DNA of 64,000 nucleotides from Laetmonice hystrix (taxonomy: Eukaryota), in contig OZ249440.1 of the NCBI GenBank assembly GCA_965235115.1, positions 11,470,001 to 11,534,000 of the forward strand. Direction: 5' to 3'. Positions 45,401-51,400 of this stretch are shown here, one piece after another. The notes under the pieces were generated by a model that had not been told where the DNA came from, made no database searches, and was given only the letters and a program-made list of their open reading frames with translations. A program made the position numbers and the translations under genes. The first letter of the stretch is position 1. Each line of letters starts with the position of its first letter.

Positions 45401-48400
45401 CTGGGAATTTTTACCACTAATAAAATGTCGCTTGCTTTTTTTGCAGGACGAATGTTTCCTACAAAATCGCAAAGGCCTCAAACGGAGACGCTTGGGTTGA
45501 GGCGCAGGGCAAGCTGTATTCTCCCAGTCAGGTTGGCGCCTTCGTCCTCATGAAAATGAAAGAAACGGCAGGTAAGCTTCAAGGGCTTTTGGAGCTGGTC
45601 GAGGATAATAATGAAAAGTGTCATTGAAAGATGTGATAGTGAAAAAGTAATTGTCTCTTTACAAACTTTGTTCTGACCAGAAAAATACACAATGTTGGTA
45701 TTTGTTTCCAGATAGCTACCTTGGAACAAGTGCAAAGAATGCTGTGGTAACGGTCCCAGCTTACTTTAACGACTCCCAACGACAGGTAAGCACAGGCTCC
45801 AGGTTTCAGTATCTTCTTGTGGCAGATATAATGCTACAACAAGTGTTTTAAATGTCCCCCAAATATCTTTGTCTTTCTGAAAATATTAAGGCACATGATC
45901 AGGAGATTGTGATGGCTTCAAAAGTGAAAATTAAAGTTGAATATATGAAACATAATTAGCCCAAGTTGGCACTTCACCTGCCTCAGCCATAAATAAGGGT
46001 TGCACGCTACTACTGACTACTTGTAGGCGACCAAAGACGCAGGACAAATAGCTGGTCTTAATGTCCTACGTGTCATCAATGAACCCACAGCCGCAGCCTT
46101 GGCCTATGGCATGGATAAGTCAGATGATAAAATGTAAGTTGCTATGTGTTTCTATTGAGTGAAACAATAAATCCCAAATCTGTGTCTTGGAAACTGTATG
46201 CACTGATGTTGTATTTTTCGTCAACCGTAAGACAGGCTGTAAAGGCTTGCATGTTGAAACTTGCTTGCTGAGCATACATGTACCTCCATAAGTACTAATG
46301 AAGAACCAACTTGTTGGAAGCATTGGCCCTCCCCCTATCTCCAACCCCCTCATAAAAACCTTTCACACACCCTCCTGTTCATCATAGCCATGAGTGAAAG
46401 TTCCATCCTGATAGGGTTTTCTGTGAGTGAAAGTTCCATCCTGTTACGGGTTTCTATGAGTAAAAGTTCCATCCTGTTACGTTTTTTTTATGAGTGAAAG
46501 TTCCGTCCTGATATGGTCTCCCTGAGTTGTTCCTGTTCCATATTTCCTCTGCCTGCACAAACTTAATTTTTTGCACATTTTCAGTTCCTTCAAACTTTCA
46601 ACCATGCATACCCTCTTAATGAGGGTTGAAATTTCATATTTTAAACGTGCCCAGATGATTCATTAAATTCTAGGATGCATTTAATTATATAAAGTATTAG
46701 ATTAAAAGCTGCATATTGCCAGAAACAAGAATGTACGTGTACAAGTAACCTATAACATGTTCAGGGTTCGCACACGTCCTGGAAATCCTGGAATGTTCAG
46801 TTTCTGCCTAGTTGTCCTGGAATAATGCTGGAATGTCCTGGAAAAAGCGTTTCTGGCCTATTTCAGAAAATGAAATCCCTTCATATTACGGGTATAACTA
46901 ACAACGCCGTCTTGCTAATATTTCTCAAATGATCTCAAAAGTTCTGGCTTTTAAGGGCAGGGGGAACATGAAAAAGTGAAAAATGACCCAAAATGCCTTG
47001 AACATTAGATGGGCTGACCAGTATTTTTCTGAAATAATGTCCTGGAAAATGTGTCAAATGTGATGGAAATGTGCTGGAATTTCATTAGTCTAAAGTTGTA
47101 TGAACCCTGCATATTTTCCTTCACCATTTGGGATGATTCTGGTTCTTGGGGATGTTGAGATTTGCCCATTTATATCAGCTTTGTTATTCTCTGCCCCATT
47201 ACTGGATCAATATTTGATTATTTCCCCATTTTTTGGTCACGATTGAAGGATCGCGGTGTATGACCTTGGCGGTGGCACGTTTGACATCTCCATCTTGGAG
47301 ATCCAGAAGGGTGTGTTTGAGGTGAAGTCAACCAATGGAGATACCATGCTTGGAGGTGAAGATTTTGACAACTTTCTCCTTAGATTCTTAGTGGATACCT
47401 TCAAAAAAGAGGTTTGTCTTATTTTGTTTCATACCCTGGAAAATTAATAATTTGTATGAAATGATAGTTTATTAAAAAAAAATGTAATGGATGAATACAG
47501 GGGAGTACTGGGTAACTGTAACTTTAGCAATTTTTCCAGTTTTACTCTTTCTTGCATCCTTCATATAGAAACATACTAATAACAAGGAATCAAATTGTTC
47601 TTCCTGGAAAATTTAGAAAAAAAATGCCTGAAAATTTGGTTTGCTGTAACTCAAGTAATCCTGTGTTATTTAAAGGTTATGTAAAAGTGGTGAAGAACCC
47701 GAGGTTGAACCAAGTTGACTGAAACCTGTTGGTATGATTGCAGCAAGGAATTGATGTAACCAAGGACAACATGGCTGTCCAGAGGCTGAAGGAAGCTGCA
47801 GAGAAAGCCAAGATTGAGCTGTCGTCTTCCATGCAGGTGAGGCACTAAACCCATGAAAACCAACGTGGGAATTTTGCACGAGTGAATTGTGTTTATTCAG
47901 ATGAGTGCAGGTCCCTAGAATGTGCCTCATCATGACAACTGTTCGATTCCCGATCCAGGGGCCTGTCTTACTACTAAGGTCTGGTTATTAACGATATCGT
48001 TAAAACTTCATTAGGAATGCATAAGAATCTTTGGTTAATAACGATGTGATTAATCAGAGGCCTCCCATTCACGGCAGGGTAAATTTAACTATCATTAATA
48101 ACCAGACATTACTGAGACAGACCCCAGTGTTTTAAGTCCAGATCAGGACTGTAAAACATTTAATGATTTAGTTTGTGCCTTAGCACATGTTGTTGCGACT
48201 AATAGTTGCATTCTCATTTAATATGTGATTTTTAGAGGACTGCAAATTTACATTATTGGAGGCTTTGATGGCAATAGAAGTGGACTCCATTGATGACCCA
48301 GATCCAACTCTGAGCTGCAGTGTGCTGAATAAACACATTATGAGCTTTTTAACGCTGAGGAATCCACTGCCAACAAATTTTGGAGAATAGATCGTGGTAA

Positions 48401-51400
48401 TAAAAGCTGGTATCAGAAACTAAATGTTGGTTATTGGTTTGTTTCAGACTGACATCAATTTACCCTACCTGACCATGGACCAGTCAGGTCCCAAACACAT
48501 GAACCTAAAGCTGACACGCTCCAAGTTTGAGAGCCTGGTCGATGACCTGATCAAGAGAACGGTTGGACCGTGTCAGAAGGCTCTGCAGGATGCTGAGATC
48601 CAGAAGAGTGAGATCGGAGAGGTGATCCTGGTCGGCGGCATGACTAGGATGCCCAAGGTTTGTTGTTACTTGATCATATACAATGGGAGATAATAAGAAT
48701 CGATTGTTGTGAGGAGTTTTATTGTTCTATCAGTGGATTCCGTTGATGACCCAGATCCAACTCAGAGCTACAATGTGCTGATTAAACACTTAAGAGCTTT
48801 TTAACCCTGAGGTGTCCACTGCCAATGAATTTTATGGAAAATCAGACATTGAGAAGAGTTATAAAAGTTTTTGGGGTAACATTTGTGCTGTCCCACTTTG
48901 TGAAGGATTTTCAAGACAGCTCATATAGTGCTGGGTATTGATTAAGATCTATGAGGTAATTTAGAAAAGATTTTCAGGAGTTCATCTATGAATGATATGA
49001 AGATTCGAGAAATTGTACAATTAATGTGCTTCGGTTATCTAGGTACAGTCTGTGGTACAGGAGCTGTTTGGTCGTACCCCAAGCAAGTCTGTCAACCCTG
49101 ATGAAGCCGTCGCCATCGGTGCTGCAATCCAGGTGAGCAGGAACTTTTTGTTTTGTAAAATTAGAAAATTCCTTTATTCAAACACATGAGAAAATGATTC
49201 TGAACTCGCACATTCATGATTAAACCTTGATGAGGCTGAATTATCATCCCGTGATGTTTCGATGCAAACCTTAGGGTGGAGTTCTCGCTGGTGATGTAAC
49301 GGACGTGTTGCTTCTGGATGTTACACCATTGTCACTTGGTATTGAGACACTCGGTGGCGTGTTCACCAAACTCATCAGCCGAAACACGACAATCCCAACC
49401 AAGAAAAGCCAGGTAAGTGGGCCCTTTGGTTTACTTTGAGTGTTCAGATAGAAGAAACCTTTGCCTGGATAGTAGATGGAGTCCTTGGGCAGCTATAGAT
49501 GATGACTCAGATCCAACTCAGAGCCATAATGTGCTGATTTCACTTATTGAGCTTTTTAACCCTGATATAGCTGTCATTCTTAATATGAGAAAACATTTTA
49601 GGTTTTTCTTTGAAATTTAAACATGTTTCTGGAAATATTTTTGAAAATACATTAGAGGCATATCCAATCGTAAATGTAAGAGGTTATGTATCTAGGCAAA
49701 CCTTAAAATAGTAGAGATGTTTGCAAATATCAATATTAAAAAGAGGAAGAAGTTATAAGTTGCAACATTTATTATACAAAAGAGAAAAAAATACTGATGC
49801 AAGTGATGAAAATGATCCAACTCAGAGCTCCAATGTGCTGAACCTAACAATGAGCTTTTTAACCCTGATGCATCACAGAATCAAGCAAAGCCATCATTAG
49901 GTCTTTGTTTATTAGTCTTTTGAGATTCTTAGTCATTTCCGCTTCCTTTCTGGTATTATAAGCTAGAAAGAATCTGTAATTTGAAATATAAATTCCAATA
50001 TTTCTAAAAATGAAAAAAGTAATTAGCAGATGACAGAAGGACTTTGCAGTAGTTGAGACAGGGCGACCAAGTGTTAGGTGTGTCAATTGTGTTTTTTATA
50101 TACTTTTTTTTAATCTTTAATTTTGTCCTTTATTAAATGGACAGGTCTTCTCGACAGCTGCTGATGGTCAAACACAAGTGGAGATCAAAGTACACCAAGG
50201 AGAGCGTGAGATGGCATCAGACAACAAACTCCTCGGACAGTTCCAACTGGTGCGTGCAATCAATTATTTTATCTACAGGACTGTTTGTGTATGGTTGTAT
50301 GGCAGTGAAAGGCAGAAGTTCCAGATACCGTGTTTCTGTGATGATTATATATCGCCAGTCTGATGAAAACTGAAGAAGATCTATCTGAGAAGCACTTGTG
50401 AGTCAAAATGGAATGGGATTCTAATATTTAGTCTCTACTTGCTGGGGAGATGACTCTTATTATATTTCAATCGGCAGAAGTAAGTTTTATTTTCTACCAG
50501 TTTTAACTATACCAGAAGATAAGCATAAAGAAAAGAAAGATAAAAGGACAGAAAATATATCTTAATTCAAAGACCAGCAGAGTCCCTAAATCATCTTACA
50601 AACATCTTCTCAATGAAAGCCAATTAAACACTCGTGCACACTAAAGATAAATAATGTAATGAAATCAAAGTATTCCCCCTTAACAAGTGGTCTGGCGTAG
50701 AAATGATGAGGTTAAAGTCCGTGTTTCACCTGACTGATAGTGATCGACACCCTTGACTTGCTGAAACCTGCCAGGAGTATCACTAATATTGGAAGCATTT
50801 ATTTCTGCTTGGATATGGAGCTGAGGAGTTTCCCACACTGCTCAGGGTACCACAACAGGATTTCTATTCGTTAAATTAATTAGCTTGGGGGAGGGTTAAG
50901 TTAAAATCCCTCTGGCATCTAATGAGGGGGTCTGGTGCACTTTGCTAGATCTTCATAGTGCCAAGACTAGCGTATACCCATAGCGAGCTATATGTAAGAG
51001 GTCATAGATTGAAAGGAAGGAGATATTCTCCATTAATGTGGTGTGTCTGTGATGATTGTGCGATGTTCTGATGAATACTGAAGAAGATTTGTCTGAGAAA
51101 CACTAAAGTGTTAATTGGGCAACTAAAAATTCTGTTGCAATTTAGGTTGAGTTTTAGGAACAAGAATGTTTGTCTCCTGGCCGTCTCACTTTTCTTTTCT
51201 TTTTTCTTCTTTTTTTTGTTGTTGTTGAGTATTTTTATAGCTGTGACGTTAATAAAGTCAGATCAGTACCTTTACTAGAGTTGGAAATGGCATAGGAATT
51301 GAATAAAGTCGTGAGTGGTTGCCTAGACATGATGAGTTTTAGTCCGTGTTTCACCTGACTGCTAGTGATCGACATCCTTGACTACCTGATCTAGGCATGT

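Follow-up and report, generated by a model that had tools for sequence, protein, structure and literature searches.

SNORD36 is one of the oldest families of small nucleolar RNAs (snoRNAs) of the box C/D class. Its members U36, snR47 and AtU36 guide the modification of 18S ribosomal RNA (rRNA) at A668 in human, A619 in yeast and A621 in plants, respectively, and U36 of Trichoplax retains the homologous site. In yeast snR47, Arabidopsis U36a and chicken GGgCD18, the 18S-A668 guide (3') is joined in one RNA to a guide for 28S-A3703 (5'). In human the two guides are spread over U36A/B and U36C, with the 28S-A3703 D' guide located in U36C and not in every SNORD36 member. A nearby 18S site, G683 in human and G644 in chicken, lies 15 nt after the U36 site in both species, and is served by HBII-108/SNORD19, which carries its guide at the 3' (D) position and has GNL3 as its host in both. 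Here we describe four small RNA genes in DNA of Laetmonice hystrix (assembly GCA_965235115.1, contig OZ249440.1, positions 11,470,001 to 11,534,000), located in introns of the gene for HSPA9/mortalin, the mitochondrial Hsp70. They are probably SNORD36 paralogues in which the D' guide has been exchanged, so that one RNA would address the equivalents of both A668 and G683. In this text, we use the term window to refer to the whole stretch of 64,000 nt, and all coordinates are window positions.

The closest described system is SNORD36/U36 itself (U36A/B/C in RPL7A in human). The four copies have its box C/D layout, its size of about 78 nt, and an identical D guide followed by CUGA, hence the same 18S-A668-type target; as in U36, several paralogues occupy consecutive introns of one housekeeping gene, and a UGCA-type terminal stem is present in copy 4 and in most of the related copies from metagenomes described below. 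They differ in the D' guide, which here is a 9-10-nt complement to 18S around G683 rather than a 28S-A3703 guide, and in the host, which is HSPA9 (a uL23 gene or a CHD-like gene for the metagenome copies) rather than RPL7A, with two copies sharing a single intron. The likeness to SNORD19/HBII-108 (and to SNORD19B, first published as SNORD117), which reside in GNL3 introns of vertebrates, is confined to the predicted target nucleotide, 18S-G683 (G644 in chicken). The SNORD19 guide is 11-15 nt long and placed at D (3'), whereas the present one is 9-10 nt long and placed at D'; there is no sequence or model similarity to the copies, and the hosts are different (GNL3 versus HSPA9). The first-pass annotation of this DNA had remarked that humans use separate snoRNAs in separate hosts for the two sites, which agrees with the published location of U36 in RPL7A and of HBII-108/SNORD19 in GNL3.

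Single C/D snoRNAs with two guides for sites 14-15 nt apart on the same rRNA are represented by SNORD24 (28S Cm2338 and Cm2352) and SNORD50A/B (28S Cm2848 and Gm2863). Both belong to other families, act on 28S sites and have been established by experiment; the present case is known from sequence alone. One ribonucleoprotein (RNP) serving two such closely spaced sites therefore has precedents, and no new mechanism is involved. For the combination of A668 and G683 guides in one RNA, no description was found in the literature searched; the nematode and fly snoRNA catalogues are outside that coverage, so that an earlier description there is possible.

Structure of the four copies

Four copies of one small RNA gene are found on the + strand between positions 48280 and 49875 (Table 1), where the first-pass annotation had placed them; the motif search, the element map and Rfam all agree on this location. 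The window contains no runs of N. The 5' half of every copy consists of box C ([A/U/G]UGAUGA), 3 nt, and a 10-nt element, AGAUCCAACU (UGAUCCAACU in copy 4). This is followed by the D' box (CUGA in copy 1; CAGA in copies 2-4), 9 nt, the C' box (UGCUGA) and 10-13 nt, and then by the 3' part, in which the 12-nt D guide GAGCUUUUUAAC is separated by one nucleotide from box D (CUGA). The D' guide, (A)GAUCCAACU, stands directly before C[U/A]GA. According to the motif search, its core GATCCAACT begins at 48301, 48754, 49510 and 49814, and the D guide GAGCTTTTTAAC begins at 48342, 48794, 49549 and 49852. The single guide sequence that had been proposed for all copies holds for copies 1-3, with a D' match of 10 nt, but not for copy 4, which reads TGATCCAACT and consequently has a match of 9 nt. 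The spacing of the D' and C' boxes is correct and the same in every copy (13 nt from C to D' and 9 nt from D' to C'), and both boxes are off consensus.

In all four copies, the ends next to box C and box D are joined by a predicted terminal stem of 7-10 pairs. Copies 1 and 2 are close paralogues, near-identical to each other, and have the same type of stem (GUGGAYUCC/GGNNUCCAC), which in copy 1 extends to 48279-48288/48359-48368. The stem of copy 3 has about 10 pairs and a differing sequence, with the core CAGCUAUA/UAUAGCUG, and that of copy 4 (GAUGCA/UGCAUC) is of the UGCA type and resembles the Rfam consensus.

Table 1. Coordinates of the four snoRNA copies and of the HSPA9 exons identified around them
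Feature	Position	Strand	Box C	D' guide	D' box	C' box	D guide	Box D	Basis
Copy 1	48285-48363	+	48290-48296	48300-48309	CTGA 48310-48313	48323-48328	48342-48353	48355-48358	Rfam SNORD36 34.2 bits, element map, fold
HSPA9 exon between copies 1 and 2	48448-48657	+							70 aa aligned to residues 279-348 of PDB 'Stress-70 protein, mitochondrial' (E 6.5e-34)
Copy 2	48738-48815	+	48743-48749	48753-48762	CAGA 48763-48766	48776-48781	48794-48805	48807-48810	Rfam SNORD36 30.7 bits
HSPA9 exon after copy 2, 30 codons	49043-49132	+							Translation; fits between PDB-matched neighbour exons to within one residue
HSPA9 exon directly upstream of the intron with copies 3 and 4	49275-49412	+							46 aa aligned to residues 380-425 of 'Stress-70 protein, mitochondrial' (E 8e-23)
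Copy 3	49493-49571	+	49499-49505	49509-49518	CAGA 49519-49522	49532-49537	49549-49560	49562-49565	Rfam SNORD36 35.5 bits
Copy 4	49797-49874	+	49803-49809	49814-49822 (9 nt; 49813 = T)	CAGA 49823-49826	49836-49841	49852-49863	49865-49868	Rfam SNORD36 42.7 bits, best of four

Predicted targets on 18S rRNA

The two guides are complementary to adjacent stretches of the 18S segment quoted in the first-pass annotation, a segment taken from eukaryotic 18S and not from the host's own, and the double-guide design proposed there is borne out by the sequence. The D guide makes 12-14 pairs with this segment and the D' guide 9-10 contiguous pairs. Five positions back from box D is a U, whose partner is the first A in the A5 run (the equivalent of A668, and of yeast A619, an adenosine that is universally methylated); five positions back from D' is a C, whose partner is the first G of UUGGAU (the equivalent of G683), 15 nt downstream of that A. 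The earlier +5 arithmetic was correct in this respect, and the spacing is that of A629/G644 in chicken and A668/G683 in human. The D' guide pairs with AGUUGGAUCU, and in four out of four copies the pairing ends exactly at the D' box. On the rRNA, the two target stretches are only 2 nt apart, and the guides cover 22 of 24 consecutive nucleotides of 18S; in copy 1, a wobble-extended pairing of the D guide would overlap the D' target.

Judged by the Rfam consensus, the target of the D guide is within the invariant core of 18S, and the D' target begins in the conserved CGUAGU and reaches into the first letters that vary. The reading required by the D' guide is AGUUGGAUC(U), in the segment after GUUAAAAAGCUCGU. 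The quoted segment is genuine eukaryotic 18S: it is present in more than 120 contaminant pieces of eukaryotic ribosomal DNA (rDNA) among contigs of 'bacterial' genomes, and one of these contigs (L017) is a complete small-subunit rRNA (1778 bits) containing the segment. For the letters after GGAU, we counted only metagenome-assembled genome (MAG) contigs from invertebrate or environmental holobionts, leaving out the short, low-coverage contigs of isolate assemblies; among these 21 contigs the letters are UUC in 15, AUC in 5 and CUC in one (L083). The GGAUCU form of 18S exists, but it is lineage-specific. No copy of the segment was found in viral contigs, and there is also no 18S in the window.

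As a separate observation, the contigs with eukaryotic 18S rDNA (L006-L085 and further, more than 120 in all) are filed under bacterial or archaeal species genomes, and represent host or contaminant sequence in MAGs and isolate assemblies; some of the short, low-coverage ones may be human.

A fifth match to the D guide at 29890 (29887-29905, + strand) is not a snoRNA, since there are no C or D boxes nearby. At this place (GAGCTTTTTAACTGCA), 16 nt are antisense to the quoted 18S segment and continue beyond the snoRNA guide; this could be a decayed snoRNA remnant or a chance match.

Assignment to the SNORD36 family

The Rfam model of SNORD36 (RF00049, clan CL00051) is 77 positions long and has a curated gathering score of 30 bits. 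All four copies exceed this score (Table 1), and each is aligned over model positions 1-77 of 77. The D-guide block, GAGCUUUUUAAC-N-CUGA, is identical letter for letter to the model consensus. The D' region, on the other hand, has another sequence than the consensus block (GAAUUUCUU...CUGA), which is of the A3703 type, and is aligned to it with low posterior probability. A 28S-A3703 guide of the GAATTTCTT type beside a D or D' box occurs nowhere in the window. The first-pass annotation had expected partial Rfam matches to both SNORD36 and SNORD19. The former was matched by all four copies, but SNORD19 (RF00569) is absent from the 70 Rfam matches at E<=10 for positions 40000-58000, and Rfam 15 contains no family closer than SNORD36.

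These comparisons also alter the evolutionary interpretation. The annotation had treated SNORD36 as a single guide, and had proposed, as one of two options, a lineage-specific fusion. Since U36/snR47/AtU36a was already an ancient double guide, for 18S-A668 and 28S-A3703, the event would be a replacement of the D' guide within SNORD36 and not a fusion of SNORD36 with SNORD19.

Conservation and selection among the copies

Between box C and box D of the four window copies, the columns of boxes or guides are invariant in 40 of 41 cases, as compared to 6 of 27 for the other columns (Fisher p = 3e-11); in the flanks, no more than 3 of 45 columns are invariant. Three unrelated sequences make up the terminal stems, all of them paired, and 7 of 10 stem pairs have changed on both sides (i.e., by compensatory substitution). 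This covariation was counted on the four window copies only; a MAFFT alignment of 14 copies, with those from metagenomes included, loses the register of the terminal stem. Of the sequencing runs searched, three contig sets from one sample contained the locus, and no RNA run did. These independent contigs, assembled from short reads, extend across all four copies and confirm the assembly; they carry 21 substitutions or indels in 47994-50400. None of these variants is located in the 314 nt of snoRNA, versus 3.4 expected at the intron rate (P = 0.035).

The four-copy pattern is far beyond chance, and it shows both guides to be under selection. Taken together, the invariant columns, the compensatory stems and the lack of variants in the snoRNAs speak against the copies being silent duplicates, and against gene conversion of a simple kind. 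We consider it very improbable that the set includes, or consists of, silent or decaying duplicates (snoRNA pseudogenes), conserved by recent duplication or gene conversion. Vertebrate intronic C/D snoRNAs have their optimum roughly 70-90 nt from the 3' splice site, and copies 2-4, at 227-573 nt, are beyond it; copies 1 and 2 are also near-identical. However, spacers, flanks and stems are strongly diverged and the boxes and guides are not, and conversion would have homogenised the spacers as well; stem pairing has been kept by compensatory changes, and the snoRNAs themselves are free of variants.

Occurrence in metagenomes

The architecture is not confined to this genome. Metagenomes were scanned with a pattern consisting of GATCCAACT, 19-49 nt and GAGCTTTTTAAC-N-CTGA, which gave seven matches on five contigs (L001-L005). 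All seven are C/D snoRNAs with a box C and exceed the SNORD36 threshold (32.9-44.2 bits), and in most of them the terminal stem is clear. Three further SNORD36 paralogues of 71 nt, on L002 and L003, were found by the Rfam model only (43-51 bits); in these, too, AUCCAACU adjoins the CUGA of D' on its 5' side, and AGCUUUUUAAC precedes box D. In 14 of 14 copies (the four of the window and those from metagenomes), the complementarity ends exactly at the CNNA box, and the C-to-D' spacing is 13-15 nt. The pattern of box C plus D guide had 0 matches in viral contigs.

The metagenome copies have other hosts. On L002 and L003 these are four consecutive introns of the gene for ribosomal protein uL23/RPL23A (Pfam PF00276, with E values of 4e-15 and about 1e-14). 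L001 and L005 have the copy in the same intron position of a CHD-like gene (a weak match, below the Pfam cut-off), and on L004 C/D snoRNAs are densely clustered, at intervals of 240-300 nt. The A668+G683 variant is thus common to at least four or five organisms, among which the host gene has changed. It provides a searchable signature for a phylogenetic survey, in the form of two fixed guides with a variable host gene.

Some details of these contigs are of separate interest. Each of the four consecutive uL23/RPL23A introns (L002, 2600-4480, - strand; L003, 330-1330, + strand) contains a SNORD36-like double guide, two of the 71-nt form and two of a 78-83-nt form, and on L002 a subtilase-family gene is located on the strand opposite uL23/RPL23A. 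The cluster on L004 (11-2176, - strand) comprises at least seven C/D snoRNAs on one strand (two SNORD52-like, the SNORD36 double guide, one snR60/Z15-like, two snR61/SNORD38-like and one SNORD31-like) with no obvious exons, which points to a host gene that is non-coding or to a polycistronic unit.

Interpretation and alternatives

We interpret the four copies as functional, intron-encoded paralogues of SNORD36 (U36/snR47), in which the D guide would direct methylation of the A668 equivalent and the D' guide, swapped from 28S-A3703, that of the G683 equivalent; we put the probability of this reading at roughly 70%. The variant as such is well supported at the level of sequence. The snoRNAs would be released from the introns of HSPA9 pre-mRNA, and, as in established C/D RNP biology, each copy would assemble one standard RNP with Snu13, Nop56, Nop58 and two fibrillarins. 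Its D site would then methylate the A668 equivalent, and its D' site the G683 equivalent. Simultaneous formation of both duplexes on one rRNA molecule appears sterically unlikely, and we expect the guides to be used sequentially, because the targets are collinear and 2 nt apart, and the extended D pairing of copy 1 overlaps the D' target. The first binding would raise the local concentration for the second. As for the direction of the swap, the family's old D' guide for 28S-A3703 would have been replaced by one of the 18S-G683 type.

Several points weigh against this interpretation. The D' duplex is short (9-10 bp), and the 3' half of its target falls where the 18S sequences of different lineages start to diverge (UUC, AUC or CUC after GGAU). 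Three of four window copies have CAGA as their D' box, and CAUA, CUAA or CCGA occurs among the metagenome copies; the C' box, UGCUGA, is without the A of the canonical sheared pair, so that the internal K-loop may be weak. The identity of both guides in the seven metagenome matches reflects ascertainment rather than constraint, since the scan pattern had fixed them. Finally, the expression of the snoRNAs and the ends of the RNAs are predictions from DNA.

The same degenerate D' (CAGA, CAUA, CUAA, CCGA) and non-canonical C' (UGCUGA) boxes could mean that only the D guide methylates, at the A668 equivalent, and that the upstream element is an accessory pairing, which would aid binding beside the target or the folding of the helix 21 base without any methylation of G683. 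A pairing of only 9-10 bp, located 2 nt from the target of the D guide, would add local affinity, and van Nues and colleagues are said to have found, in 2011, that extra snoRNA-rRNA pairing stimulates methylation. Degenerate D' and C' boxes are nevertheless common among working metazoan double guides. Furthermore, a helper would not need the geometry of a D' guide, and yet in all 14 copies the pairing has an exact end at the CNNA box and lies 13-15 nt from box C; the +5 nucleotide is, in addition, a site known to be methylated in vertebrates. We therefore regard accessory pairing as unlikely. It is quite improbable, in our estimate, that ancestral animals already had the A668+G683 double guide and that vertebrates later split the two jobs between SNORD36 and SNORD19, a view that the first-pass annotation had offered as one of its options. 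The layout is found in at least five organisms and in three or four host-gene contexts, so that it is not a recent oddity, and SNORD19/HBII-108 (G683) has no yeast, Arabidopsis or Dictyostelium counterpart in the published guide lists consulted. But snR47, U36a and GGgCD18, from yeast, Arabidopsis and chicken, all combine the A668-type guide with a 28S-A3703 guide, and the D' block of the Rfam consensus is alike, which makes a split in vertebrates the less likely course; SNORD19 carries its G683 guide at D and not at D', with no detectable similarity to the copies.

If a D' guide swap within SNORD36 did take place, the locus would be a clean case, found in nature, of a guide exchanged within a family that is among the oldest of the snoRNAs. 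Its D guide has been frozen since the last eukaryotic common ancestor, while the D' slot would have been re-aimed from 28S-A3703 to an 18S site that is served in vertebrates by an unrelated snoRNA. Should this invertebrate methylate the G683 equivalent, then either the modification predates the vertebrates or it arose twice by means of different guides, and this would be an argument for the importance of the site as such. A more far-reaching proposal is that the A668+G683 guide is an old and widespread animal form of SNORD36, that G683 methylation predates vertebrates, and that the SNORD19 gene arose when the job was handed over. The RNP could also be a two-hit module, which stays on one region of the pre-rRNA (the helix 21 base/expansion segment 6) and holds the strand open during early folding, an idea prompted by the nearly continuous coverage of the 18S segment by the two guides. 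We offer this proposal as speculation, and think it is rather unlikely to be right.

Host introns and neighbouring elements

The four copies occupy three HSPA9 introns, described here as consecutive, with splice sites read from the sequence. Copy 1 is in the intron at 47837-48447, 84 nt upstream of the 3' splice site, and copy 2 is in that at 48658-49042, 227 nt from the acceptor. The intron at 49413-50144 holds both copy 3 (the first) and copy 4 (the second), at 573 and 270 nt from the acceptor, respectively.

A highly repeated short element is located in the intron just upstream of copy 1. Over its 33 nt (47972-48004), the summed contig depth climbs from about 50 to roughly 13,000, and it is here that many contigs stop.

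Other C/D-like elements are found on the + strand on either side of the four copies. Upstream, in the same HSPA9 gene, about eight SNORD31-like copies (41648-45367) have the common guide UUUACCGCCCCAGGCUGA, and score 19-32 bits versus a Rfam gathering score of 40. Farther downstream, seven SNORD82-like copies (53433-55727; 24-34 bits versus a gathering score of 43) end in UUGA instead of CUGA, and seem all to belong to a single HSPA9 intron. At 50338-50388 and 51045-51097 there are two short, mutually related C/D-like elements, which share the core CUGAUGAA-ACUGAAGAAGAU-U-UCUGAGAA and have weak Rfam matches only (snoR26, SNORD31, sR11). A further C/D candidate at 51329-51389 has an 8-bp terminal stem, and its matches are likewise weak (SNORD126, 27 bits; SNORD18, 24 bits).

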